The notes under the pieces: model-generated | The model's database searches: none | What the model was told of the DNA's origin: nothing | The model's input: only the letters and a program-made list of their open reading frames with translations | Made by a program: the position numbers and the translations under genes | Shown: one piece after another, positions 1 to 63,566 of the stretch | Layout: the number at the start of each line of letters is the position of its first letter | Numbering within the stretch: the stretch's first letter is position 1 | Source: Syncephalis fuscata S228 | Taxonomy: Eukaryota > Fungi > Zoopagomycota | Length of the DNA: 64,000 nt | Direction of reading: 5' to 3' | NCBI GenBank assembly: GCA_025786725.1 | Contig: JAHLTZ010000029.1 | Coordinates: 62,001-126,000, forward strand

Positions 1-892
1 TACTGGTAATATCCAAGAACAACGTGACCAATTATTAGGCATTCAAATGCAGATGGTGCTGTTATATATAGTGCTGTATGTATCTACACACAACTGTATT
101 ACTATCAGTAGAATGGTTATAGCACAACCTTATGCAATAGCTGCATGGTGCTGTTTAATTCCATCTTTTGTAGGTTTTTTAACTGGAATATTTGTTATAA
201 TTGCAGTACTAGGCGGTTCAATGGCTTGTCGAGAGCTTACATTGACAATTTTAACTGGAATGGCTTTTGCTAATCCATGTAACAGTTTGGTTTTACTTCA
301 AAAAACATATTTAATACCATCATGTCCAAAATAAATTATATACATTGGTACTCCGCTTATACTAGCTCAACTAAGCTTTATAACTGTGCTTTTCTATAGC
401 ATATTTACTATCGAAACAAAAGTCGGCTGCGTAGATTATCATCCAAAGCTGTTTTTATGGTATTGGTTTTCTGTTTCTATGCCTGATAACATACTATTAT
501 CAGCACTTTTTAGTCGAATTGCACTAAAGCAATATCGGATGTTTGGCTCAGACATGTGGAAGCGATTAGCCCGTGATGGTTTACAAATAATGTCCATGAC
601 TGTGCTGTGCAATACAATATGCTACGCTTTCATTGCATTTCGAATTGGGGGAGATAATGCTGAACTACTTTTTGTTGTAGATTGGTAAGAGATAGTATTA
701 TGTATTGCAATATAAACTAATTGACTGATATATAGGATGATTATTGCTACACTATTAGCCAAACGCTGTGAAAGAATGCGCAAAATTAGGGATGAATCAA
801 ATCGACCCAAGACCGAATATATGATTGGTGTATCACAGATCACTACTGCGGTCTCATTAACAGAACTTGACAGTTTAAAATACAACATATAA
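1..892 (+). pseudogene. Orphan 7-TM GPCR-like family member (5' end outside window) with in-frame TAA at 332-334
   Basis: ORFs 47-334 and 386-688 are in the same frame and align with the intact paralogue at 54024. CCA AAA TAA replaces CCA AAA TGG. It has the family intron after the D-W codons and a second exon ending TAA at 890-892. Confidence 0.75.
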
Positions 893-28950: not shown

Positions 28951-29815
28951 GAATATTATTAAATAACCACAACATGTTATGTGATTAACGCATTTTATTT
29001 AACTTTAAGTAAATAGCATGGACTCACAAAATTCTAAATGTTAAAAAGAAATGATATATGATATATTTAATAGTTTAACAATACCATATAAATAAAGCAT
29101 TGAAATTACTGCTAAAAGAACTAGTGTGCCGTAGTTGGATTGTATGTACTTGGCATGCTTTGTTTCATATTAAAATATAATCAAACCTTTATGTTTTGAT
29201 TTAAATATTACTGGAGACCTGACCCAATATGGATTGCTCGCTCAATGTTAACTTATATTTTTCTATTGATACTGGAAACTGTAGTTGTAAACTAGGCTCA
29301 CATTATATTTTTATATACAATTTAAAGCATACTATAAAAGCTTATTAATTCAAAGATAATAAACTTAACCATTTATACAACTGATTGTGTCTCTTTCAAA
29401 ATCATCAAATCTCTCGCATTTCTTTTTAGAAACTATTTATTATTTTTATTGGCAAAATATTACATCAAATCCTTTCTGTAGTTTATTCATATATCACATG
29501 ACGCAAAAACAATAATGCCCAGAAAGAAACATTAAGTTAATTGATGCAAGGCCTCAGTTACTAATATAATGCAGGATTTTTGTGCATTTTTAGCCTTATT
29601 GCTTGCCGTTGTGTTGCATAGAGGCCTCAAACAATATCATGCGAGCTGTTGAATGTTAATAGTTGAATTTATTTAATAAATGTTTGCGGACATTTTATTA
29701 CGATGCAACTATATCGCCCATTTTTAAAACCTTTTATTTAAAGCGATTAATATTGCAGAAATATAATACTGCATATCACAATCTTCTACTTCTAACGTTA
29801 TATTGGCATTTTAAG

Positions 29816-31813
29816 ATGCACTTTAAATTATGCACTGCTGCCATTGTTCTGGCATTTGTTGCTGCCGCTTCATGTTATATCGAGCATATTGAAGTTACTC
29901 CGATTATTCCAGATATTACTACAAACTCTGAAGTTCGTAGTATGTCTTCAATGTTAAGCAACTACAAACCACCAGTATCATTGGTGGCTCGCAGTCCACA
30001 AGAAATTGCACTTGAGTTTGCCCGTTCACAACTTAATGTTAAGGACAGTAATTTTATTGTGTTAAATTCCTACAAGACCAAAGCCAGCGGCACTACTCAT
30101 GTCTATCTTCAACAGACCATTAATGGAGTTAAAGTATCAAATGGTCGTATAGGCGTTCATTTAGACAAAGCCAATAAAGTAATTGCATACGATGACAGCT
30201 TTTATAAAAGCAACTTGACCACTCAAGACAATTTGCATAAACTGGTCACTCGACAGCTTAAAACGTGGAATGGGCAAACTAACGGATTTGTATCGCCGGT
30301 TGATGCTTTTCGTACATTTGCCGCACATATTAAGCAAACATTTGATGCAGGCAAAGTAGCAATTGTGCCAGAAGCCAACACGCCAGGTGGCCAATCATAT
30401 TTGATTAAGAATGTCGGATTTATTAAAGAAGATGTTAAAGTATCACAATCGTACACACAAGTCAGCTCTGACCAGCTTGTGCCAGTATGGGACTTTTATG
30501 TTAAAATGCCGCTGAATTACTTTCACGTTCAAGTTTCTGCTGATGGTGCCAAGATTATTTCAATGACAGATTTGGTTCGATTTGCTAGTTATCGTGTCGT
30601 TAAAGCAGGGAACAATAATCCCATTGACACGCCACGAGAACTTGTTACAAATCCAGCCGACAAAATTGCATCACCCGATGGTTGGCACTTCAGTGGCTCG
30701 CATACGTTTACAAATACTACAGGCAATAATATTATTGCACAGGAAAACTACAACGGCGATTTAACTAATCGAAAACCACACCATCTGCCTGATGGCGGAC
30801 AGACTTTGAGCTTTGATTTTCCGTTTGATCCTAAGAAAAATCCAAAAGATAACATCGATGCATCAGTCACCAATGCATTCTATATAGCTAACACAATGCA
30901 TGATATATTCTATCATTATGGTTTTGATGAAGCGGCAGGCAATTATCAAAACGATAATTACAACAAAGGAGGCCTAGGTAATGATGCTATTACGGTTAAT
31001 GTGCTTGCATATTACGATGATCCGCCTAGTAAGAATACAAGAAACAACGCCATTTTTAGTCCAGCTCCTGATGGTAAAACTGCTACAATAACTCTGTTGG
31101 CTTACAATAAAACCATTCCCGACCGTGACAGTGCTTTTTCAAACGACATCATAATCCACGAATATGGGCATGGTGTTGCAACTCGATTGGTCGGCGGATC
31201 AACAACTATTGAGTGTATGTACACATACGAAGGTGCAGGCATGAGTGAAGGCTACAGCGACTTTTTTGCATATTGGATGGAAATGAAATTGGCTGACAAG
31301 CCCACCAAAGTGAGCGAGAATGCCAAGTATCCCAATGCTGGTGGTTCGCGCAAGTATCCATATGCAACCAATATGGCTATAAATCCTTTTACATATAAAA
31401 ACCTGAGCGATAAAAATTCGGGTTTAGAAATGCACGTTGTTGGCACGATATGGGCTACGATGCTTTATGAAATGTATTGGAGCTTGGTTAGCAAACTTGG
31501 CTTCCAAGAAAACAAATACTTTGCCGATATGACAAAAGGTAATTCGCTTGCACTTCAGATTGTGCTTGATGGAATCAAATTGCTGGCATGCAATCCCACC
31601 TTTATTTCAGCTCGAAATGCCATTCTTCAAGCGGAAAAACAGCTGACCGGTGGTAAACATGCTTGCGATATTTGGCGTGCATTTGCCAAGCGTGGGCTAG
31701 GTACTGAAGCAGGTATGGGTGCTGATAAGAGACGGTTGAAAGTACAGATTTGCCTGAAAATTGTAAAGTTTGATACGACTAATCATGTTGCAACGAATAA
31801 TAACAATACTTGA
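29816..31813 (+). CDS. Secreted fungalysin metallopeptidase (M36), intronless
   Basis: Signal peptide MHFKLCTAAIVLAFVAAASC, FTP-like propeptide (THVYLQQTINGVKV), HDIFYHYGFDEAAGNYQ, zinc motif HEYGHG, GMSEGYSD, CNPTFISARNAILQA, IWRAFAKRGLG. The true stop is probably at 31773 after a terminal indel (..STDLPENCKV*). Confidence 0.95.
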   Translation: MHFKLCTAAIVLAFVAAASCYIEHIEVTPIIPDITTNSEVRSMSSMLSNYKPPVSLVARSPQEIALEFARSQLNVKDSNFIVLNSYKTKASGTTHVYLQQTINGVKVSNGRIGVHLDKANKVIAYDDSFYKSNLTTQDNLHKLVTRQLKTWNGQTNGFVSPVDAFRTFAAHIKQTFDAGKVAIVPEANTPGGQSYLIKNVGFIKEDVKVSQSYTQVSSDQLVPVWDFYVKMPLNYFHVQVSADGAKIISMTDLVRFASYRVVKAGNNNPIDTPRELVTNPADKIASPDGWHFSGSHTFTNTTGNNIIAQENYNGDLTNRKPHHLPDGGQTLSFDFPFDPKKNPKDNIDASVTNAFYIANTMHDIFYHYGFDEAAGNYQNDNYNKGGLGNDAITVNVLAYYDDPPSKNTRNNAIFSPAPDGKTATITLLAYNKTIPDRDSAFSNDIIIHEYGHGVATRLVGGSTTIECMYTYEGAGMSEGYSDFFAYWMEMKLADKPTKVSENAKYPNAGGSRKYPYATNMAINPFTYKNLSDKNSGLEMHVVGTIWATMLYEMYWSLVSKLGFQENKYFADMTKGNSLALQIVLDGIKLLACNPTFISARNAILQAEKQLTGGKHACDIWRAFAKRGLGTEAGMGADKRRLKVQICLKIVKFDTTNHVATNNNNT

Positions 31814-43193: not shown

Positions 43194-45821
43194 TTAATTT
43201 GAAATACCCAAATCCTTTGCCTAGTTACAGTATAGTATAGAATAAGTATATATTGTTGTTATTAATAACATTTTTATAACTTACAATCATTCGAGATGCA
43301 ATAGGATGATATTCATCACGGTTCTTCAAAAAAGTATCTTTGGCCAATTGACTATCCACTTTATTGAGCCCACTATTAAATATAATAATGATTAATATCA
43401 TTACGATTATGTATATAATACTAGTAAACTACTTACCGGTAAAGTGGACGAACGTATTTCATACGTCCTTGTTCTTCTAGGAAAGTAACAACATGTGGAT
43501 AGATGGGCGAGTAGGCAGCACTTAGACATAACATTTGCCAAGCAAATCGTACTTCACAATTGGTAACTTCTGTCAATCCGTAGATCTTATCCATAGCGGC
43601 CAATTTATCCGCAGGCAATGATGGATACTCAGATAACTTGTCAAAGAAAGCAACTAATTAAATAGAACAGTTAATATTATGTTATGTAATAGTTGCTTAG
43701 TAAATATAATTACCTTTTTGACTAGATGAAAAATCTTTAATATCATTAGGAGAAAAATCCAGTTTATCGCTATTACGTGCAGCATCCCAACTAACATATT
43801 ATGTTAGTATATTCATTTAATATAGCCATCTACTTACCGATTAGCAAGAGAGATACACGCTTCAGCCAATGATGTATCAAACTCATTAGTCACTGGTGGC
43901 TTTTATTTAATAAACAAATGGTTAGCCATTCTATTTACTTAATCACTATTGCTACTTACCATACCAGTGCCTTTAATCCAAGCATGCCAATCAACTTGAT
44001 CAAGTACTTTAACCTTTTCATCTCCATGATGTTTACGCATATATTCATATAAGAACAACTTCCAATCATTAGTATCAATTGATTGACCTGCAAATCGTTC
44101 GACATACGCCTTCATATAAGGCTCAAATACAGAAGGGCCGCCTAATAACTGTTCAAGATAATAGAGTAGATTATAGCCTTTCTCGTATGGTACAGTAGAG
44201 AATGCATCATCTGGATCGGCTCCTTCAAGATCTGGACATAAAGCAGTAAATGGATGGTCTGGTCCATACTCGTCAATATCTGTCTTCAAATCTTTTAGAC
44301 CGAGAATTGACGAGAATTGACGGTCGGCCTCAGAGTGTAGTCGGCCAATGATCTTTCTTTCAATAAACATGGTCCAGCCTTCATTTAGCCAGAAATGCTC
44401 CCAGTTCTTTGTGGTCACTAAATTGCCCATCCAACTATGAGCAATTTCATGGGCCACCACGTCTACAAGTGATCGGTCACCCGCCAATAAAGTAGGGGTT
44501 ACAAAGGTTAAACAAGGATTCTCCATACCACCATAAGGGAATGAGCTAGGCAGTACAAGCAAGTCGTAGCGTCCCCATTCATAAGGTGTTAATAAAGATT
44601 CACCAGTAGCGATAAAGCGCTCTGTATCAACAAATTCCCAAGCGGCCTTTTCAACCACTTCAGGCTCTGACCAAACAGTTGATCGTGGACCAATTTCTCG
44701 TCCTTCGATATTACCAACTGCCAAAGCAACTAGATAAGAAGGCATACTTGTACGCTGTTCAAATCGATAGGTCACTGATTGGCCATCACTTGATACTTCC
44801 TGGCCGACATTCAATGCACTCATAAGTGCACGTAATGGTTTGGGTGTATGAATATTGGCCGAATAAGTCAGCTTGATGCCTGGTGAATCTTGAACAGGCG
44901 CCATACTACGTGCATGAATCTAAATAAACTATTAGTCATATTCTATTAACCAGTTGGTGTCACTTACTGCTTGCATTGTGTAAATAAATATGGATGTTGT
45001 TTACCAACAGTTTGCCTAAATACACGTATTGTTTAATTAGCTACTTATTATCGTATGGCTGTAAAGACTAACATGGGCGTAAGCCATTGAAGCGCACTAG
45101 CTTCACGAGTAGTCTCATATTCCACTACTAGATCAAGTTTATCGTCGACTTTATATTCTTTAGGCAATTGAATACGCAATGGTGTGCCATATCGATGATC
45201 TTTATCGCCTAATTCAAACTAAATAGTATACTGTTGATAAATAGACCGTTGTTATAATAAACTGTAGGGTACCTTTAATGGCTCTGCATGGTCAAGCAAT
45301 GATACATTTTTAATATTTAAAGCATTGGTATCCAACGTTACGGTCGATACGCCTTCCTTGACCGCTTGTAACGATAGTCGACTCGTACCGGCGAGTATTT
45401 TACGACTAAAGTCAACGTTTAAATCCAAATGCAGGTGGCGAGTTTGGATTTCATCTGTATTAGCAAACGAATTGGGATCCATGGTATCGAACGGCAAAAT
45501 GCGTGTGGTAGAAGATGACAGAGACGCCAATGAAGAGGAGGACGCGGCCCGTCGAAGTAATAATTGATAGAATGTACGACAGCAAGCACAGTGGTCGGCG
45601 TGGATAGAGTGACGCGATCGAGGCAAAGCAGCAAAGGTGGCAGTTAAAGAAGAGTCGTTCGAGTGAGTCGATAGGCGTTTTACAGTGGTAGTGGTGCCTA
45701 AATTCGACGAGCCATGGACGTCATGGTAACCTTTTGTAACAGTGCTGTCAAAACAAGAAAGCCAGCGTCGGTTAATAAATCGCATACGTGGCGCTTTCAA
45801 CGGTAAGCAGAACAGTCCCAT
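43194..45821 (-). CDS. LAP2: Leukotriene A4 hydrolase / M1 aminopeptidase; conserved start MDPNS at 45482 with an in-frame upstream ATG at 45821
   Basis: DPNSFAN, PYGGMENP, HEIAHSW..HFWLNEG, FSTVPYEKG, QGRMKYVRPLYR. Confidence 0.94.
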
Positions 45822-49787: not shown

Positions 49788-50798
49788 TTAGCTATTTGTT
49801 GTTTCGGGAAGTTGTTGATACGTTTTAACTGTTTCAATTTGCGATAAATGCATAATATGTTCAGTTCGTGGGCGATGCGATAGTCTAATAATCTTACGCA
49901 TGCTATCGCAATGCTTGACTAGAATTGTTGAAGAAATAAGCCTAGCTTTGGTTTAGTATAGTGTAACGTTTTGTCTAAGATTTACTTACCAATCAATGTC
50001 AAAAAAGTATTCTGAAAAACTCTCGCCAATTTCAAGAAAAATGGAAATGCCACATAATATATTACAAGTGACTACTAGTGCCATCGTTTGAATGCCTTCC
50101 TGTGCTAGGCGTTTCCATGCCTCTGATCCAAAAAGTTTATATTGTTTATAGGCAACATAGCTGAAAATACTAGAAAATAAAAGATTGATGGGTAACACCG
50201 ATCCAGACCAATACCAAGGAAAGGCAGCTGGATAGAAAGCAACGCAGCCTTCATTATCAATTAAAGTAAGGCGCATTACAGCAGCACCCATTATTGGATA
50301 GCCTGCTTGAGGTAAGATGCATATTATACCAACAATCAAAACCCAACGTGGCCTACACAATACAAGGTAGGCTTTCTGCAAAATGATTGCGCTGCAGCAA
50401 ACAAGCGACGTGCCTATTCCTAAAATATTGTACCAGCATAGTATTCGGCAGCTTAAACCGAATGACGATAATGTCTGAGTGCTCAGTATACCTAGAATAA
50501 GGCCCGAAATTGATGAAATTAAGCAGCACCACGATGAAAGTTTACGAGAGCCAGCAACGATCATTTTAATGGAAATATACACATTTTGTGCAAAGATATA
50601 ACCGAATATCATCATAAACGCCACTTGGCCATTAAAACCAAACATACGTTTTTGCATTAAATCTCTATCGTCACCAGATTCTATTATATGATCAACGGCT
50701 TGCACCTCGCCTAGTGGATAAAGAGAAATACCAAGAAAATAAGTGGCGTTCTTTTCCCACTCGGGGCCAAGAACTGGAACATTGTAATCAATTGGCAT
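49788..50798 (-). CDS. Orphan 7-TM GPCR-like protein, intact, 2 exons
   Basis: Seven hydrophobic segments, Cys at the start of TM3 (CRIL) and in ECL2 (GCVAFYP), LQKAY at the end of TM3, conserved QYKLFGSEAWKRL loop, intron after D-W. Confidence 0.8.
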
Positions 50799-51724
50799 TA
50801 TTACGCTAAATACAAAGATAATAAAAATGTTTAGGTAAAATATAGAACTAAGCTGAATAATAACAATGTTATTGTTTCTCTATCTATGTATGTTCATATA
50901 TATATACAAACGATATTGCGGATAATTGATATATACGGCTCTAGTACACGTGGCATGGTAACCCTGTATAAAACAGGCCTTGGCTTACGAAGATTCTTGT
51001 TGGCAATAGCGGTATAGACGAAGAATGACTAATGTTTAATAAATATATACAACTATATGACTACCTTTAATGTTAAGCTAAATAAACAGTATATTTGTAG
51101 TTTTACTGTTTAACATCCAATATAAAATAATAGCAAATGCTATCATAAAATAAAGAAATGCTACCGCAGTGAATAGTAGGCACATACAGCGATAACAGTA
51201 TGCACATCCTAACAAATGTGGTGGACTGTGACAGTGATTCAATGGATTACCCGGATGTTAAACATCGACTTTGCTTATTATGGTAAAAAATACCATGTGC
51301 AGCCTGATCACTGCTAAATTGTTACAAAAATAGAAATATTTATGCAACCTGTGGATTATCGATGGTCTAGAATAAAAATAAACCATTTTCTATTGTATTG
51401 CTGCGAGTTATATTGAAAATCCAATGAGCCATTGGTTTTTTAAAGCTATACAATATTCTTACAGTCAAATGCACGGATGACATACACTTAATGTAAATAC
51501 ATGTTGTAATTGCCTATATTCAACCAAGTATTGATCTTTACGTTAGTTTTATTTTATTTAATAAAACATTGGGCATTATATTATTAAAAATAATCAAGTA
51601 AACAAAGCTATAAGTTTATAAACAATATATAATGCTAATATTGACTGATACAACGTGTATTTTATAAATTATTACATGTATGGAAAAATACTAAATTAAA
51701 CACTCTGATTTACATAATATTCAA

Positions 51725-53100
51725 CAATATATAATATGATTTTAACACACTATAAAGTCTTAGCCACTTTTGCTATCGTATTGTGTTAATTCTTATTATA
51801 TGGTTAAAACTAAATAATCTATACCGTCCATGTTTTGCATTGCATTCAGCAGCAATATAAGTATTATTGCGCACAGCTCATACCGCGTAACAGCAGTGCA
51901 TGCATGCATATCATTCATTAGCCTATTCGAGACCTCGTATAAACCAGTGTTGGGTGCTAGTGCACATACAATCACTGAATATATACCATATGGTATGCCT
52001 TTTAATGTGCAGAACCATTCACTTATTTTCCTAATTATATAAATTCTAAAACTTGTAACAGTCATTCAGCTACTCAACTATCTATTATTTCTATATTATT
52101 ATTATAATTCATTTTGTTTATACTATATTGTACCCGCAACAATGCCATTTATTGACAATAGCGATGGTTTATATCTTAAGCGGTTGAACCATCTTTCAAA
52201 CGAATGGAATATGGCTGTCATTCACTTGGTACTATATCAATATACGGCTTTTACATGCAAGCTACTGGTAATATCCAAGAACAACGTGACCAATTATTAG
52301 GCATTCAAATGCAGATGGTGCTGTTATATATAGTGCTGTATGTATCTACACACAACTGTATTACTATCAGTAGAATGGTTATAGCACAACCTTATGCAAT
52401 AGCTGCATGGTGCTGTTTAATTCCATCTTTTGTAGGTTTTTTAACTGGAATATTTGTTATAATTGCAGTACTAGGCGGTTCAATGGCTTGTCGAGAGCTT
52501 ACATTGACAATTTTAACTGGAATGGCTTTTGCTAATCCATGTAACAGTTTGGTTTTACTTCAAAAAACATATTTAATACCATCATGTCCAAAATAAATTA
52601 TATACATTGGTACTCCGCTTATACTAGCTCAACTAAGCTTTATAACTGTGCTTTTCTATAGCATATTTACTATCGAAACAAAAGTCGGCTGCGTAGATTA
52701 TCATCCAAAGCTGTTTTTATGGTATTGGTTTTCTGTTTCTATGCCTGATAACATACTATTATCAGCACTTTTTAGTCGAATTGCACTAAAGCAATATCGG
52801 ATGTTTGGCTCAGACATGTGGAAGCGATTAGCCCGTGATGGTTTACAAATAATGTCCATGACTGTGCTGTGCAATACTATATGCTGTGTGGCCGTTGTGT
52901 CTCGAATCGGAGAAGATAATACTGACTATTCTTTATTGTCGATTGGTAAGGGCGGTAATATATAATATTGCGTAAACTAATTGGTCAATATATAGGGTGG
53001 TTATTGCTACGCTACTAGCCAAACATTGTGAAAAATGCGCAAAACTAGGGATGAATCAACCCGACCCAAGACCGAATATATGATTGGCGTATCACAGATT
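51725..53100 (+). repeat. Left arm of ~1.37 kb inverted duplication (partner 56060-57427)
   Basis: The upstream region, CDS and intron match the reverse complement of 56060-57427, with scattered substitutions and indels. Confidence 0.9.
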
Positions 53101-53115
53101 GCTACCAAACTTTGA
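52142..53115 (+). pseudogene. Orphan 7-TM GPCR-like member with in-frame TAA (52594-52596) and indels
   Basis: MPFIDNSDG start, aligns to the 54024 paralogue, TAA at the conserved Trp codon. Confidence 0.75.
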
Positions 53116-54023
53116 TAATAAATTAATGATTTAAATACAGCATCTAAATAATTATACAATTAATATTGCAACGAACTATGGTTAAATAAATAAAATGCAA
53201 ATACTATATAATATTAATTAATAAAAAAGATACTATATAAATTATTGTAGTAAATTTGATATTTTGTTCGAATGCATAATGTTTTATGTGATACCTGTTG
53301 CGTCGACTAATATTGGAATTAAGCACTTTTACATAACTTTATAGTATATATTAATTTGTTTAGTTTCAATATTAATGCTATATTGTTTAATTAAATACCG
53401 ATAAAATGGCATTAAAAATTAACAATTTATTAAAAATAGACAAGCACAACATGTGTTTATATTGAGCGTTTATTATCTATTATTCTGAAAATATACTAAA
53501 TGTGATGCAGCAATTATACAATATGTCTTGTACATTCAGCATTAAAATTAGGCATTATCACAAGTATTTACAACCTATTACCTAACTGATAATCTTAACA
53601 ATATATGATATAGTTTTAGTACATTACATAATTCTATTCATTTGCTATAATGCCAATCTTTATTATATGGCTGAAAAAACAGAATAATTTAACTCGCCTA
53701 TGTTCAGCCTTGCATTCTGAAGCAATACAGGTTTTATTGTGCATAAATCACACCCCGTGATAGTAGTGCACATATATGCTTATCAGTATTGACATATTTG
53801 AAACCTCTTATAAACCCGTACCGAAGTCTTAGTAGAACATACATTCACTGCAATATAAACCATAGGGTATCGGTTCCTAATAGGCGAGAACCCATTTACT
53901 TCTTCTTCTTCTTCGCCGCATAACATCTTAAAATTTACGACAATTATTCAGTCGCTTTGCTATTTATTATATTATATTAATACAAATAAGATATCTTACT
54001 TATACTATAACATACCAGCAACA

Positions 54024-55037
54024 ATGCCGTTTATTGATGGTAGTTACGGCGTAAATCGTGAGCGACTGGATCGTATGGCAAGCAAATGGAATACGACTGC
54101 TGATTCCCTTGGTAATATACCATTATACGATTTTTACATGCAAGCTGCTGGTGATATTCACGAACAGCGTGATCGATTATCAGGTACTCAAATGCAAATA
54201 GTACTGTTAACTGCGGTACTGTATGTATCTATATACAACTGTATTTCTGCTATCAGGATGATTATGGCACGGCCATATACAATAGCTGCATGGTGCTGTT
54301 TATTTCCATCACTTATAGGCTGTTTAGCCCCAATATTTTTTGCGAATGCGGTGTTAGGCGGCTCAGCGACCTGCCGAGACATCATGCTGGTAATTTTGAT
54401 CGGAATGGTTCTTGTTAATCCATGCAACAGCTTGGTCTTACTCCAAAAGATATATTTGATATTGTCTCGTCCAAAATGGATTATATACGTTGGTATTCTA
54501 CTTATAACAATTCAGCTAAGCTATATAACTGCGCTGTTCTATAGTACATTTACTTTCGAAACAAAAGTCGGCTGCGTAGATTATTATCCAAAGATATTTG
54601 TATGGTGTTGGTTATCTGTTTCTATGCCTGGTAACATACTGTTTTCAGTCCTTTTTAGTCGAATTGCACTAAAGCAATACCGAATATTTGGATCGGACAT
54701 GTGGAAACGATTGGCACGCGATGGTTTGCAAATAATGTTTATGACTGTGCTGTGCAATATGATCTGCTCTTCAGTCATTGCGTTTCGGATTGGAGGAAAC
54801 AATGCCGAACTATGCTTTATTATAGACTGGTAAGAAGTGGTAGTATGTTTTGGAATATAAACTAACTGATCAATGTATAGGGTGGTTATTACTACGCTAC
54901 TAGCCAAACACTGTGAAATAATGTGCAAGACTAGTGGTGAATCAAATCGACCCAAGACCAAATATATGCGTGGTGTATCACAAATCATTACTATGACACC
55001 AATAGCAGAGAATGATGATTTAAGACATGAAATATAA
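54024..55037 (+). CDS. Orphan 7-TM GPCR-like protein, intact, 2 exons
   Basis: Exon 1 of 269 aa with WCC, TCR, LLQKIY, RPKW, GCVDYYP and QYRIFGSDMWKRLARDG. Intron after D-W, exon 2 ends TAA at 55035-55037. Confidence 0.8.
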
Positions 55038-56006
55038 GCAGTTTTGGCACATTATTAATATTATAGAAATTAAGCGCTTATCATTGATAGTGAAATATGG
55101 ATAAAGAACAATTTCATTTGCAACAAACCCATTGACTGCATCAATATGTTATAAAAAAGCAAATTATATACAAAATAAGTCTAGAGGAGTTATTACAACA
55201 GAGATTCAAAAGATTTATATCGATTTCATGGACGAGTGGTCTTTTTATGGCTTAATTCAAAAACTTTATTATCTATTGTTGATTTAACAAACCAATTACT
55301 CATTTGATAACAAAATATAGCAATATGGCTTTATAGATAATGTATTACATCAGATCTGGACTGTCATATACAACCTTATACTTAGTGCGCAATAAATCTA
55401 TATTCTACTCACACTTTATATGTATAACAACATCGGATTACCATGATGTATATTTATATTTGCATATTATATTGCTTTATGCGCGCAGCTACAAATACAT
55501 ACCAGTAATATAACTAATAAGTGATATCATATACTTGTCGTATGTATTGCTGCAATATGGTTTATAGCTAAATTATGGCGTATTGAGAAACCAGCACTAG
55601 TTTAAATTAATTTACAGTTTTAAATCATCGGTGACTGATAAGCAGGCAATTGGTAATACTGTTTCAGCATGATCTGGATATGATAAACCATGTGTCTGTA
55701 ATAGGATACAATACTAAAGTTTAAACCAACTAAATTGCTTTAATCTATCGATCATAAATAGAAATTAACACAAAAGCTACATTATACTAAATAAATCTGC
55801 ATTGTGTTATAAACAATATCAAACCATATATTATTAAGAATCAACAATATGCAAATGGTAGTTTCTATCTACACAAAGAATACTTACATAGATGAGTAGT
55901 TTTCTAAGAAATCAAAAATAACAAGCTTATATAACCTTTTACGCATATATAATGATATTTACAATTTATTAACTTAATTGTAATTTTTAGGATATATAAA
56001 AGCGGC

Positions 56007-57014
56007 CTATATTTTATATTTCAAGCTATCATTTTCTGCCGTTGGCGCTGCAGTAGTAATTTGTGATACACCAAGCATATATTTGGTCTTGGGTCGGGTT
56101 GATTCACCCTAGTTTTGCACATTATTTTACAGTGTTTGGCCAGTAGCGTAGCAATAACCACCCTATATATTGACCAATTAGTTTACGCAATATTATATAT
56201 TACCACCCTTACCAATCGACAATAAAGAATAGATCAGCATTATCTTCTCCGATTCGAGACACAACGGCCACACAGCATATAGTATTGCACAGCACAGTCA
56301 TGGACATTATTTGTAAACCATCACGGGCTAATCGCTTCCACATGTCTGAGCCAAACATCCGATATTGCTTTAGTGCAATCCGACTAAAAAGGCTGAAAAC
56401 AGTATGTTACCAGGCATAGAAACAGAAAACCAATACCATAAAAACAGCTTTGGATGATAATCTACGCAGCCGACTTTTGTTTCGATAGTAAATATGCTAT
56501 AGAAAAGCACAGTTATAAAGCTTAGTTGAGCTAGTATAAGCGGAGTACCAATGTATATAATCTATTTTGGACATGATGGTATTAAATATGTTTTTTGAAG
56601 TAAAACCAAACTGTTACATGGATTAGCAAAGCCATTCCAGTTAAAATTGTCAATGTAAGCTCTCGACAAGCCATTGAACGGCCTAGTACTGCAATTATAA
56701 CAAATATTCCAGTTAAAAAACCTACAAAAGATGGAATTAAACAGCACCATGCAGCTATTGCATAAGGTTGTGCTATAACCATTCTATGATAGTAATACAG
56801 TTGTGTGTAGATACATACAGCACTATATATAACGCACCATCTGCATTTGAATGCCTAATAATTGGTCACGTTGTTCTTGGATATTACCAGTAGCTTGCAT
56901 GTAAAAGCCGTATATTGATATAGTACCAAGTGAATTGACAGCCATATTCCATTCGTTTGAAAGATGGTTCAACCGCTTAAGATATAAACCATCGCTATTG
57001 TCAATAAATGGCAT
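56007..57014 (-). pseudogene. Orphan 7-TM GPCR-like member with in-frame TAG (56562-56564) and multiple indels
   Basis: Inverted copy of the 52142 gene, reading CCA AAA TAG ATT at the conserved Trp codon. Confidence 0.72.
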
Positions 57015-57427
57015 TGTTGCGGGTACAATATAGTATAAAAAAATGAATTATTAATAATAATATAGAAATAATAGATAGTTGAGTAGCTGAATGACTGTTA
57101 CAAGTTTTAGGAATTTATATAATTAGGAAAATAAGTGAATGGGTTCTGCCATTAAAGGATACATATGGTTATATTAGTGATGTATGTGCACTAGCACCCA
57201 ACACTGGTTTATACGAGGTCTCGAATAGGCTAATAAATGATATGCATGCATGCACTGCTGTTACGCGGTATGAGCTGTGCGCAATAATACTTATATTGCT
57301 GCTGAATGCAATGCAAAAGCATGGACGGTATAGATTATTTAGTTTTAACCATATAATAAGAATTAACACAATACGATAGCAAAAGTGGCTAAGACTTTAT
57401 AGTGTGTTAAAATCATATTATATATTG
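56060..57427 (-). repeat. Right arm of ~1.37 kb inverted duplication (partner 51725-53100)
   Basis: Reverse-complement match, with a sharp end of similarity at ~57427. Confidence 0.9.
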
Positions 57428-58171
57428 CTGGAAATCATCAGCTAAGCACCAGGCTATAGATATTGAGAACACTTAATTTTAGTGATGATCGCATAGAAGA
57501 TATTATATAAACTGCTGCATCACATTTAGTATTTTGTTCAAGTGTGTGCAGCATGGTAAATTTAGGTCACTAGTACACTAAAATCAAATATATACGAGTA
57601 CTATTGAGTTTATTTATAAATTTTAAAAATTTGTAATGATTTATAATGTCGCAGGTTTGATTAACAGCTAAATGATCTCTGGCTCTAAAAACTATACGAT
57701 ATTTCTACATTGAAAATACACGGACAGTATACGCTCAATATAAATACATGCTACTTTTGTTTATCTTTTAATAAAGCGATATTAGCGTAGAAATACTGCT
57801 TTATTGCTGTTTAGGCTAACGCTATTACAACATAATTACTGTAGCTTTTTTGCTCGTTCATCCAATCCCGCTGATGTCAGTTATAATATAGTTGTTGCTT
57901 TTAGATGGTATTTATAAAGTTACTAGCTTGCTCAATAGCTTCCTTGTAATGGTTTTTTTGTTAGAGGCGAGACTTGTCATTGTTTCTAGCGCAGAAAAGT
58001 GTATTTGATGCTCATAGTCCATTAAATACTTTGATCTGACTCAAAATATACCAGTTTATTCTAAGGGCATAAAAATGAATAATCAAGATATTTCTATTTG
58101 CTATGATTTGCGAATAAATCTAGCGATATTAGCACAATTGCTACATATTGACCAATTAACAGTCTATTATT

Positions 58172-59167
58172 CTATGGAAGTTGTTGAAAATGTTTAACTG
58201 TTTGAATTTGCGACAAATGCATAATATTTTCGGTTCGTGGGCGATGCGATAGCCTGCCAATCTTACGCATGTTACTGCAATGCCTAACCAAAATTGTTGT
58301 AGAGACAAGCCTAACATTGGTTTAGTATATTGTAACGTATTATTTAATATTTACTTACCAATCAATGTCAAAAAAAAACTCTGAAAAACTCTCGCCAATT
58401 TCAAAAAAAATGAAAATGCCACAAAATGTATTGCATGTGACTACTAGCGCCATCGTTTGAATGCCTTCCTGTGCTAGGCGTTTCCATGCCTCTGATCCAA
58501 AAAGTTTATATTGTTTATAGGCAACATAGCTGAAAATACTAGAAAATAAAAGATTGATGGGTAACACCGATCCAGACCAATACCAAGGAAAGGCAGCTGG
58601 ATAGAAAGCAACACAGCCTACATGATCAACTAAAGCAAGGCGCATTACAGTGGTGCCCATTATTGGATAGCCTGCTTGAGGCAAGATGCATATTATACCA
58701 ACAATCAAAACCCAACGTGGCCTACACAATACAAGGTAGGCTTTCTGCAAAATGATTGCGCTGCAGCAAACAAGTGACGAGCCTATTCCTAGAGTAATGT
58801 ACCAACAGAGTACTCTGCAGCTTAAACCGAATGACGATAATGTCTGAGTGCTCAGTATACCTAGAATAAGGCCTGAAATTGATGAAATTAAGCAGCACCA
58901 CGATGAAAGTTTACGAGAGCCTGCAGCGATCATTTGAACAGAAAGATACACATTTTGTGCAAAAATACAGCCAAATATTACCATAAATGCTACTTGGCTA
59001 ATAAACCCAACTAATCGCTGTCGCATTAAAGTTCTATCATCGGCAGAGTCCATTATATAGTCAACGGCTCGCATTTCTCCAAGTGGATAAAGAGGAATAC
59101 CAAGAAAATAAGTGGCATTCTTTTCCCACTCGGTCCCAAGTATTGAATTATTATGATCAACAGGCAT
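58172..59167 (-). CDS. Orphan 7-TM GPCR-like protein, intact, close paralogue of 49788-50798
   Basis: Exon 1 of 270 aa, with long stretches identical to the 49986-50798 ORF and the same intron. Confidence 0.8.
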
Positions 59168-59902
59168 GCTTATATTAAATACAAAGATAATAAAAATGTA
59201 AGTAAAAGTAGTGGACTAGACTGGACTGAACAATGGCGGTGTTAGTGCTACTCTATCTTGCATGCTTATGTATATTTACACAGGTAACATTACGGATAAT
59301 TGATATATACGATTCTAGTACACGTGATATACTAATCCTGCATAACAGAGGCCTTGACTCTTAAGATTCTTTGTTTGCAATAACAGTATAGGTAAAACAA
59401 GAATGATTGATACTTAACAATAGATAAGAATATAAAAATATTTTTAATGTTAAGCTAAATAAACAACATATTTTGTAATCTCGATGCTTAATATTTAATA
59501 TGAAACGATAGCAAATGCTACCATATAATAAAACAAATGATGTCATAATAAATAATAGATCGCGTGCAACGATAAAAGTATGCGCAGCCTAACAGGTATG
59601 CTAACCTGTGGCAGTAATTCAATAGATTACCCGAAGATTTAGACATTGGTTTTGCTCGTTATGATGAAAAGCACCATGTGTAAATTGATTACAGCTAAAC
59701 TGTCGCAAAATGGTAATATCTATAGATTGTATACACTACCGAATGCACTAGATTACTCTCAATACCGGTTTTATAAAAGAATGCACTAGACTGTAAACAA
59801 GTTGTTTTCTATGATAATTGGTGCAAATAGCACTTTCAAAATACAATTTTATTTATAGGGTAGTTTGTACTTTTTAAATCATGAGTAAAGAATATAATAA
59901 TT

Positions 59903-60890
59903 TCAAATAGAATGATATGGGTTTGCCGTAACGATTTGCGACAGGTGTAGCACATTTTCGGTTTTGGGTTGATGTGATAATGTAAACATTTTACGCATAT
60001 TATAGCAATGCCTGACTAGAATGGTAGATGTAATAAGCCTAAAAAAAGTTAGTTTATTTGTACTGTCATTTTTCATCACTTACCAATCCATCAAAAAAAA
60101 CATTTCCGAATAGGTGCCACCTAAGTTGAAGATAATAGAAGTGCCACAGAATATATTACACAATACTACCACACTCATTGTTCGAATGCCGTCACGCGTT
60201 AGGCGGCGCCATGCTTCTGAGCCAAACAAACGATATTGTTGATAAATAGTATAGCAAAAAATACTTGAGAAAAGTATGTTGATAGGCGCAACAGATCCAA
60301 ACCAATACCATGGCATAGAAAGTGGATAGATTGAGACGCAGCCGTTATAAGCTTGGACTGTAAAACGACTAAAAAGGGTGACAAAAATTGCATAGCTCAT
60401 TTGAGGTAGCATGAAGATAATACCACAATTATCACCCAACGTGGCTTACATAGTGCTACATAAGCATTTTGAAGAATAATGGCGCTGCAACACACGAGGG
60501 AGCAAGTAAGCCCCCATACAACATACCAAACTAATGTACGACAGTTTAATCCAGTTGGAGTCATTATCTGACTAGCTACTAGTCCCAAACCTACTCCTGT
60601 GCAAGAGGATATTAGGCAGCACCATGATGATAATTTACGAGCATTAGCTACAAGCATTTTAACTGAAAGAAAAAGATTATTTGCAAAGATATAAGCTAAC
60701 ACGATCATACAGGCAACCTGGCATTGGAAACCAAATAATCGTTGTCTTATTAATGCCTTATCCTCAGGAGATTCCATTATAAAATCCATTATATTAATTT
60801 CGCCAAGCGGATAAAGAGGTATTCCCAAGAACCGAGTGGCGCCTTTTATCCACTCGGTTCCAAGGATTTTATTATATGGATCGTCGGCAT
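59903..60890 (-). CDS. Orphan 7-TM GPCR-like protein with apparent indels (error or decay)
   Basis: ORFs 60397-61029 and 60080-60439 together give the family sequence (LGIPLYPLGE, SSWCCLISS, NCR, KPRW, GCVSIYP, QYRLFGSEAWRRL, MDW) plus exon 2. Confidence 0.7.
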
Positions 60891-61671: not shown

Positions 61672-63566
61672 TTAATTTTGGAATTTAGATGGCACATCGG
61701 ACACGGCAGCAAATGCCGTGTCAAACCATTTGCGTAATTGTGCTGGTTCTTCAAGACCCACGCTTACTCGAATAAGATATGCCGATACACCATATTCGGC
61801 TGCCCATTCAAGTTCGTTGTAATGAGCCAGTAGCGTGTATGGACATGCCAAAGTAAAATTTGTACCAAGAGATGGACCCTTAGCACAGGGTAATGCATCA
61901 AAGAATGCGCGAGCTGCCTCAGGGGTGTGCAAAAGTAAAGAAAACAAGCCTCCATAGCCACCGTCGGGTCTTTTGTGCATATCATAGATATTCTTAGTTA
62001 CATATTTAGGATAGTAGACGGCTGCAACTATAAGCATATTAGAATAGTATCCAATAAATGTTAGATAGGATTTACCTTTTGGATGCATATGTAAATAATC
62101 GCATAATGATTCCGCTGTGTTATTGATTTGAGTAACTCGTTTGGCAAATGTACGAGAATTACGTTCCAAGAAAATAGCATCTTCCCACCAAAACATATCC
62201 TCGTAGCCGGGCTGTCCACTGCCATCATCTACGTTTAATGCATGGTTGATTCGGGCTCCATAAGGCAAATTAGGATTTGCAACTAAACTATAATCAGTGT
62301 TAATTAACATGACACAAATTCATTGTCTATCCATTTACCATCCGCCCATTACATTACAGTCTCCACTGAAAAACTTGGTCAAACTAGCTACAATAATATC
62401 AACTAGAGGTAGAATTTCAATATCGGAAAAGCCGCCCAATGTCGCATCTACAACAATGGCAAAACTGTACTGATTTGCCAATGCACGTAACCGATGAAGA
62501 TTAGATGAACGTAAAAGCGGATTGCTAGGAAATTCGCAAAAGACAGCAAGAATCCGCTCCTGAGCAGGATCTGCCAATTGCTTTTCCAATGCGTCGATAT
62601 CTTCTTCCAAGGCATAACCAAAAAATAGACAGCCTGGTCCAAACTTTTCCAAAATTTTAAGTGTATCTGTGTAAGGAAAACTGATTATTATTCATTAGTA
62701 GGTACATTTTAATTAATCATTACTTACCCAAAACAAACACTTTTACGCTCTGGATGTATAGCACGTAATAGACGATGCGTATTATAAATGGCACTCATAC
62801 CACATGGATACAAGTAAACGTTATCCTCTTTTAACTTATTACACTCTACCGAGCTATTACTTCTATTGTTACTATCCATATGCTTTGTAAGCTCATTAGC
62901 AATTCTTTGTTGCATCAATGATTTGGCTTCGTTGGCTTGTTTTGCACAAAGATTACGACCATATCGTTCTTCAACATAAAAGTTTGCTTCCTCCCAAATC
63001 TCCGCTTCTCCGTCTTCCATAGCATTATTCGTTGTACTACTGTTGCCCAATGATGGCTGCTCCAAAGGAATACCCGCCTCTAGTAAGCATCGTTCGGCAA
63101 ATCGCGATGAAATACCATCGCCCGTGTGTTGCCAAAAAGCTTTAGCAAATGCCCAGTCCTCTTTTAAAAGCACCGTCACATGTACAACTTGCGATCCAAA
63201 CGTGCAATTTGCAACATGAATATCGTCGCTTTGTCCAACAACTCGAGTCGGATTTGTGAGCTTGCGCTGCTCTATAATAAACTGGCGACAACGTTTAGCT
63301 ATACTTTGCGTTGGTAATAATAGACATTGCTTGTCTGGACCAGTGCCCAATTGCTCCAGACAACAGCCAGCCAATTTACGTATAGCTATGTGAATAACAA
63401 AACGCGGATAAGCGCTACGTATAGCGTTATGGATATGTGGTGCTCCCTCTTCATAGTCGACGTTATCCTGCCAAGTTGGTAACGAGACCGACACCGCGTG
63501 TGGAGTATCAGGTGGAATGCTTTCTGTAGCCCGTAATTGACGGAATGTCGGTGCCTTCGTTGTCAT
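61672..63566 (-). CDS. STR2: Cystathionine gamma-synthase, paralogue C (most canonical), 4 exons
   Basis: HAVSVSLPTWQDNVDYEEG, YPRF, FWQHTGDGISSRFAE, YVEERYGRNL, YPCGMSAI, FPYTDTLKIL, SLTKFFSG..NVMGG, KGPSLGTNFTLACPYTLLAHY, IRVSVGLE. Confidence 0.9.

Follow-up and report, generated by a model that had tools for sequence, protein, structure and literature searches.

Catalogs of fungal G protein-coupled receptors (GPCRs) have been built on Pfam or InterPro domains. Among the systems closest to the one described here are Ste2, a fungal seven-transmembrane (7TM) protein that is typically encoded by a single gene and lacks a disulfide between transmembrane helix 3 (TM3) and the second extracellular loop (ECL2), the Pth11-like receptors of Pezizomycotina, a lineage-specific, expanded 7TM family associated with a parasitic lifestyle and with unproven G-protein coupling, and the large class A of GPCRs. 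Here, we describe an array of seven gene copies, A to G, belonging to a further 7TM family in Syncephalis fuscata (Zoopagomycota, Zoopagales), an obligate mycoparasite. The whole stretch of DNA analyzed, referred to below as the window, comprises 64,000 nucleotides (G000:C212:62001-126000, 31-40% GC) of an assembly of 29.4 Mb in 371 contigs. The family is GPCR-shaped in its predicted structure and an orphan in its sequence, constituting a new family within the known GPCR fold, and we consider below whether the array forms part of a putative chemoreceptor repertoire.

Predicted fold and topology

Full-length analyses used P0001, a 320-aa database entry named hypothetical protein BDF19DRAFT_415708 [Syncephalis fuscata], together with its relatives in the database; copies C, F, and G of the window were examined exon by exon. 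P0001 corresponds to copy E, with 100% identity over exon 1. Read from the N terminus, the motifs of the family are W..NAT..GIPLHPLGE in the N-terminal region, F..N in TM1, WCC in TM2, CR opening and LQKAY closing TM3, RPRW after TM3, GC..YP in the TM4-TM5 loop, YKQY.lFGSeAWKRLa.DGIQTM spanning TM5, the third intracellular loop (ICL3), and TM6 (ICL3 itself reading QYxxFGSxxWKRLxxDG), and DW...S.IL..HC in TM7, with a C-tail motif, HC..MRK....S.RP.TE....SQI.T, that is kept across paralogs. Of 71 diverse members, 67 have both Cys117, which opens TM3, and Cys185 of ECL2; the conserved TM1 Asn occurs in 57, and the sequence [EQHS][KR]AY, typically (E/Q)(K/R)AY, at the end of TM3 in 45. The motifs singled out in the initial annotation of this DNA are therefore present and conserved in the family alignments.

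By Kyte-Doolittle hydropathy, six segments are strongly hydrophobic, while TM7 (DWLISSTILVKHC) is weakly so, yet is confidently modeled as a helix. In 16 full-length members, the mean count of Lys plus Arg is 8.1 in the three inner loops vs 1.3 in their three outer counterparts, the first 52 residues have a net negative charge and the C-tail is basic, and an N-x-S/T sequon occurs at the aligned N17 position in 14 of the 16. Loop charge and this N-terminal glycosylation sequon, both read from sequence, indicate an N-out/C-in topology.

AlphaFold2 modeling of P0001 yielded a predicted local distance difference test score (pLDDT) of 80.7 and a predicted template modeling score (pTM) of 0.78 from a 16-sequence alignment, and a pLDDT of 89.8 and pTM of 0.86 from a 71-sequence alignment. 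Seven helices are modeled at residues 45-82, 87-108, 117-146, 151-174, 192-223, 225-254, and 263-292, with an ECL2 beta-hairpin at 176-188 between helices 4 and 5; Cys117 lies at the start of helix 3, and Cys185 on the second strand of the hairpin. Both models also contain a structured N-terminal cap (residues 13-40), with pLDDT >90 in the second. The W..NAT..GIPLHPLGE sequence of this cap (window about 50679-50762, minus strand) forms a small hairpin-plus-helix over the extracellular face, and in the model residue 33, an isolated beta-bridge residue, may pair with residue 116, beside Cys117. The cap may act as a lid or tethered element.

Searched against the PDB with Foldseek, the two models returned 69 and 94 matches at E<=1e-3. 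The top matches listed are all GPCRs, almost all of class A and mostly peptide, chemokine, and opioid receptors, with a best E of 7e-5 and TM-scores of 0.40-0.56. VIA-align, which is independent of Foldseek, placed Ste2 (Z 16.1), mGlu5 (Z 15.9), and GPR6 (Z 15.6) near one another, with class C and F receptors at Z 14-16; adiponectin receptor 2 (Z 13.3-13.5) and TMEM87A (Z 13.4-13.8) scored below the GPCRs. Neither program ranked a transporter or enzyme fold above the GPCR and rhodopsin matches. For helical bundles, a Z of around 13-14 may reflect nothing more than a common arrangement, and the predicted fold is therefore most safely described as a seven-helix bundle of GPCR/rhodopsin type that favors no particular GPCR class. 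The earlier proposal of a 7TM, N-out protein with a GPCR-type fold agrees with the models, with both structural searches, and with the evidence from charge and sequon.

Family size, conservation, and array turnover

Members of the family are abundant in the genome. A six-frame search with one protein gave 142 scored matches of 377 candidates, down to E 6e-35, most of them without a stop, and in a profile search the best 130 of 531 candidates were scored, the weakest of these at 265 bits. A DNA pattern for ICL3 (QYxxxGxxxW) matched 242 times, vs 19 for the reversed control. From these counts, the genome holds at least about 220 family loci, probably more. A profile search of 1.84 billion representatives returned 320 clusters at E<=1e-3, including 139 that reached E<=1e-30. 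Twenty representatives were sampled, of which 5 are unnamed metagenome or Logan contigs and the 15 named ones all come from S. fuscata, S. plumigaleata, S. pseudoplumigaleata, or Thamnocephalis sphaerospora. Among the named relatives sampled, the family has so far been seen only in Zoopagales, with the weakest 170 profile matches lying outside the sample, so that the range could be wider; the exclusive occurrence of Syncephalis and Thamnocephalis among the 15 bears out the suggestion of a lineage-specific repertoire. In the literature on Syncephalis or Zoopagomycota retrieved with GPCR terms, we found no description of the family.

Conservation is unevenly distributed across the protein. In 25 nonredundant S. 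fuscata exon-1 sequences, column entropy is lowest in ICL3 (0.85 bits), followed by TM5, TM6, and ICL2 (1.3-1.35 bits), and highest (1.8-2.3 bits) in ECL1, TM1, ICL1, the N-terminus, ECL2, TM2, and ECL3. When each helix was halved and its outer half pooled with the outer loops and its inner half with the inner loops, the outer face proved more variable than the inner both in these 25 sequences (1.95 vs 1.31 bits, p=1e-8) and in the 71 diverse members (2.78 vs 2.34 bits, p=1.8e-6). Such a combination of a variable outer face and a common cytoplasmic one is what a receptor repertoire feeding one transducer would be expected to show.

For ten close pairs of intact exon-1 sequences, the ratio of nonsynonymous to synonymous substitution rates (dN/dS; Nei-Gojobori) is 0.07-0.31 overall. 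Within the group formed by E, F, and the genes at loci L003 and L004, it reaches 0.27-0.50 in outer regions and 0.17-0.23 in the helices, and the inner loops are without any change. Intact copies are under purifying selection, as dN/dS values of 0.2-0.3 attest, and region-wise pairwise Nei-Gojobori estimates revealed no omega >1 that would signal positive selection. The description of the array as "diversifying" in the initial annotation thus does not stand: dN/dS never exceeds 1, and the greater variability of the outer face is a relative one.

A tblastn search with P0001 recovered seven family copies in the window and none further (Table 1). By DNA identity they fall into two subfamilies, one comprising E, F, and G (64-89%) and the other A, B, C, and D (78-98%), with 47-53% between the groups; copies F and E are 85% identical as proteins. 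Both the search and the identities agree with the original count of six paralogs in ~11 kb plus one at the window start, in two subfamilies. All seven copies share one splice site, with the donor GAYTG/GTAAG (the slash marking the junction) dividing a Trp codon after TG (phase 2), and all seven introns are 45-51 nt long and carry an ACTAAY branch-like site followed by a TAG/G acceptor, in agreement with the intron noted earlier in the same Trp codon of each paralog. Because most exon-1 matches genome-wide stop exactly at this split Trp (query position 270), the intron position can be regarded as a character of the family. Many other public models of family genes end at the DW of exon 1, with the short last exon missed.

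Table 1. Array copies and nearby genes, in window coordinates
Feature	Position	Strand	Assignment	Exons and intron	Codon at RPRW Trp	1-bp gaps
Fungalysin M36 metallopeptidase with FTP propeptide	29663-31813	+	Upstream of array
M1 aminopeptidase fragment	43939-44904	-	Upstream of array
Copy A	1-892	+	Subfamily 2 pseudogene; 5' end cut by window start	Intron donor at 685	TAA 332-334
Copy E	49788-50798	-	Subfamily 1, intact	Exon 1 49990-50798; 48-nt intron 49942-49989; exon 2 49788-49941
Copy B	52142-53106	+	Subfamily 2 pseudogene		TAA 52594-52596	After 52219, 52925, 53033
Copy C	54024-55037	+	Subfamily 2, intact	Exon 1 54024-54829; 51-nt intron 54830-54880; exon 2 54881-55037	TGG 54477-54479
Copy D	about 56049-57014	-	Subfamily 2 pseudogene		TAG 56562-56564	After 56834, 56787, 56631, 56392, 56107
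Copy F	58172-59167	-	Subfamily 1, intact	Exon 1 58359-59167; 48-nt intron 58311-58358; exon 2 58172-58310
Copy G	59903-60890	-	Divergent subfamily 1 member, state doubtful	45-nt intron 60039-60083		About 60426; between 60890 and about 60858 (vs E and F)
Cys/Met-metabolism PLP enzyme fragment (PF01053)	61675-62310	-	Adjoins copy G

Uninterrupted exons are found only in E, C, and F. Copies A, B, and D each have an in-frame stop at one conserved Trp codon, that of the RPRW motif after TM3, and 1-bp gaps are present in B (three) and D (five). Copy G keeps every family motif, with its NAT sequon reading GAT. Compared with E and F it has two 1-bp gaps, and translation from the canonical ATG at 60890, in a frame different from that of the remaining gene, ends at a stop after 14 codons. 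Copy G is thus either a recent pseudogene or affected by assembly errors, and we class it as doubtful, not dead. On the basis of these stops and gaps, the window contains three intact copies (E, C, F), three pseudogenes (A, B, D), and one doubtful copy (G). Copies A, B, and D descend from one already dead copy, and a further copy on contig C21 also carries a stop. The public gene model P0087 (252 aa), which describes an A-type pseudogene, skips the in-frame stop by means of invented introns and lacks TM3 and TM4.

The copies belong to duplicated, inverted segments. Copies B (51714-53105) and D (56053-57438) are inverted relative to each other at 96.9% identity and bracket the intact copy C. 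The segment holding D and F (56014-59723) recurs as a 93% inverted copy at C212:59.1-62.9 kb, which runs into the window start and contains a P0002-type gene and copy A, and is also copied at C21:6272-10000. Identity within pairs is mosaic: A and B are 100% identical over the first ~600 nt of their overlap and then 70-80%, and E and F are 71-83% identical in DNA over the 5' third and 80-88% at the 3' end, with 95-100% in between, from TM3 to TM6. Such patterns point to gene conversion after segmental duplication, and together with the pseudogenes they support the birth-and-death evolution originally proposed for the array.

Contig C21 itself (25.6 kb; C21:1-10000, L032) repeats the receptor cluster of C212:55-63 kb, just upstream of the window, and the L003 and L004 genes differ by a dS of 0.046. 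The contig represents a haplotig or else a very recent duplication, and it slightly inflates copy counts. The remaining genes listed in Table 1 are a fragment of a pyridoxal phosphate (PLP) enzyme beside copy G and two peptidase-type genes upstream of the array, one of them a fragment.

Receptor class and proposed role

Several results weigh against assigning the family to the receptors. No 7TM Pfam family matched in scans of the 16 full-length relatives (Pfam-A, E<=10) or the 71 diverse relatives (E<=1), with STE2, STE3, Git3, Dicty_CAR, and Fung_rhodopsin/CFEM all absent, and a profile search of PDB sequences produced chance-level matches only. When the genome was searched in six frames with the 7tm_1 hidden Markov model (HMM) of class A, three other loci and no family locus were found, and the class A motifs NPxxY and CWxP are each present in 0 of the 71 members. 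The Dicty_CAR HMM, representing cAMP-receptor (cAR)-like proteins, likewise found three or four other genes (C212:164-180 kb, with a duplicate on C104) and no family locus, and hhalign comparison of the 71-sequence family profile with two cAR-like open reading frames (ORFs) gave probabilities of 1.1% and 0.1%. The Fung_rhodopsin HMM of Pth11-type receptors matched nothing in the genome, though its control search also matched nowhere. In VIA-align, microbial rhodopsins score Z 15-16, level with GPCRs, and because they score as high, the fold alone is no proof of GPCR function. Finally, conservation of the inner face between E and F stems partly from gene conversion (dS = 0 there); the zero dS of the inner loops coincides with the conversion tract and is therefore not clean evidence of constraint.

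The five exon ORFs of the window and the 16 full-length relatives had no Pfam-A match at all, the few strong Pfam matches among the 71 relatives are unrelated domains fused by gene-model errors, and when distant members were aligned and used in a word-based search, only the input sequences came back. At the class A DRY position, the family has the (E/Q)(K/R)AY analog, not DRY itself. Microbial rhodopsins can be set aside as a class, since Lys occurs in at most 6 of 58 sequences at any TM7 column, meaning that there is no retinal site, and Bac_rhodopsin does not match. With the class A, cAR, Pth11, and microbial rhodopsin tests all failed, the family is GPCR-shaped and a sequence orphan that fails the profile test of every named class. 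The view that these proteins are not Ste2, Ste3, Git3/Gpr1, cAR, or Pth11 receptors, first formed by eye, is upheld by the Pfam, HMM, and hhalign negatives.

Two observations touch on neighboring classes. P0163, a family member in UniRef, is automatically named 'G-protein coupled receptors family 1 profile domain-containing protein', which is a lead rather than a test. Farther along the contig of the window, 40-55 kb past its downstream end, are three Dicty_CAR genes (C212:164229-164786, 175641-176294, 179529-180278), interleaved with orphan-family members at C212:166.4 kb and 168.3 kb.

The genome also encodes parts of a G-protein pathway: two G-alpha genes (C306:469-470 kb and 484-486 kb), G-gamma, and 27 matches to the RGS domain (PF00615) over the Pfam cut-off, about 21 of them distinct after near-identical small contigs are discounted (for example C306:869911-870255, C279:137122-137472, and C224:181999-182325). 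This RGS count is high for a fungus and looks like an expansion parallel to that of the receptor-like genes.

Taken together, we lean, with moderate confidence, toward the array being part of a very large family of plasma-membrane receptors, each of seven helices and ~320 residues, with a predicted GPCR fold, a putative chemoreceptor repertoire. The variable outer face and the cap would bind diverse extracellular cues, and the shared cytoplasmic face would couple all paralogs to a single transducer, for which either of the genome's two G-alpha subunits is the likeliest candidate. Such a repertoire would plausibly serve host or environmental sensing by an obligate mycoparasite, and the array turns over through tandem and inverted segmental duplication, gene conversion, and pseudogenization. 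We offer only tentatively, and would sooner doubt than assert, the more specific proposal that the family is a new fungal GPCR class confined to Zoopagales mycoparasites, in which host cues recognized through a variable outer pocket would be relayed by a single conserved cytoplasmic face to the two G-alpha subunits and tuned by the expanded RGS set, with 200-400 genes in 29 Mb making up the largest chemoreceptor-type repertoire known in any fungus.

The number of receptor-like genes raises the question of transduction, as the genome has more than 200 of them and just two G-alpha genes, the microswitch motifs of class A are missing, and the cytoplasmic tail motif is conserved across paralogs. 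These features would suit seven-helix receptors that signal without heterotrimeric G proteins, either by recruiting another effector through the C-tail motif and ICL3 or by acting as ligand-gated channels like insect odorant receptors. We consider this unlikely: large ratios of receptors to G-alpha are normal for chemoreceptor GPCRs, the N-out topology indicated here is opposite to that of insect odorant receptors, the fold matches are to GPCRs, and the unusual number of RGS domains fits busy G-protein signaling. The near-GPCR VIA-align values of microbial rhodopsins, TMEM87A, and adiponectin receptor 2 raise a different question, namely whether the members of the orphan family are receptors at all, or instead a microbial-rhodopsin-type pump or channel, a PAQR-like hydrolase, or a TMEM87/GOST-like trafficking protein. 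A non-receptor role of this sort seems to us decidedly improbable, in view of the missing TM7 Lys column and the failure of Bac_rhodopsin, HlyIII, and Lung_7-TM_R to match in Pfam; moreover, PAQRs are N-in, while charge and sequon indicate N-out for the orphan family, and more than 200 copies with a variable outer and conserved inner face fit receptor repertoires, not housekeeping pumps or enzymes.

That the family might be decaying, passively amplified by segmental duplication as copies without function, is suggested by the local census, in which three or four of seven copies are broken and one dead copy has gone through at least three duplications (seen in A, B, D, and the C21 copy). Here too the wider data point the other way, since intact copies have dN/dS values of 0.2-0.3, splice signals are kept in every copy, exon-1 frames stay open over ~270 codons, and stops are absent from most of the 142 genome-wide matches; we regard wholesale decay as very improbable. 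The reading we favor thus remains that of a putative chemoreceptor repertoire with a GPCR-type fold.

Because the family matches none of the Pfam domains on which fungal GPCR catalogs are built, domain-based counts of GPCRs would miss it entirely. If the family signals, then the receptor repertoire of an obligate mycoparasite would be on the scale of animal chemoreceptor families, and its members would be concrete, clonable candidates for the finding and recognition of host hyphae by Zoopagales, processes for which, to our knowledge, there have been almost no molecular handles so far. The array also illustrates how such a repertoire turns over: segments are duplicated in inverted orientation, the core undergoes gene conversion, and a copy already dead has been recopied repeatedly.

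Comparison with known seven-helix systems

In the ESM Atlas, the nearest fungal 7TM clusters (DUF6533, DUF7703, and THH1/TOM1/TOM3-like) reach feature scores of 0.81-0.88 and shape TM values of 0.63-0.67, below the 0.9 at which a match would be more than a lead, and the DUFs are absent among the listed Pfam matches of family members. The cAMP-receptor-like GPCRs (Dicty_CAR) share the genome and the contig with the family and have no profile link to it. The resemblance to the Pth11-like expansions of ascomycete pathogens is biological: the family described here is without a Fung_rhodopsin match and without CFEM, and belongs to Zoopagales, not Ascomycota.

Ste2 (PDB 7ad3), a fungal 7TM protein that couples to G-alpha, is the best single VIA-align match of the first model (Z 16.1 over 240 residues, root mean square deviation 4.5 A) and reaches Z 14.7 with the second. 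The two differ in that the family has no STE2 Pfam match and 7% identity to Ste2, and numbers more than 200 copies where Ste2 is typically single-copy. Class A GPCRs such as orexin-1, SSTR2, and the opioid receptors differ from the family in other respects. It has no 7tm_1 match, NPxxY, or CWxP, its identity to them is ~10-15%, with TM-scores of only 0.4-0.56, and its TM2, as read from the alignment, has WCC rather than the class A acidic position. Where class A receptors have (D/E)RY at the cytoplasmic end of TM3, the family has the charged-aromatic (E/Q)(K/R)AY. What it shares with class A is a predicted seven-helix bundle, probably N-out, with an ECL2 beta-hairpin, a Cys at the top of TM3 and another in ECL2, the conserved TM1 Asn, and the best of the Foldseek matches (E 7e-5 to 1e-3).

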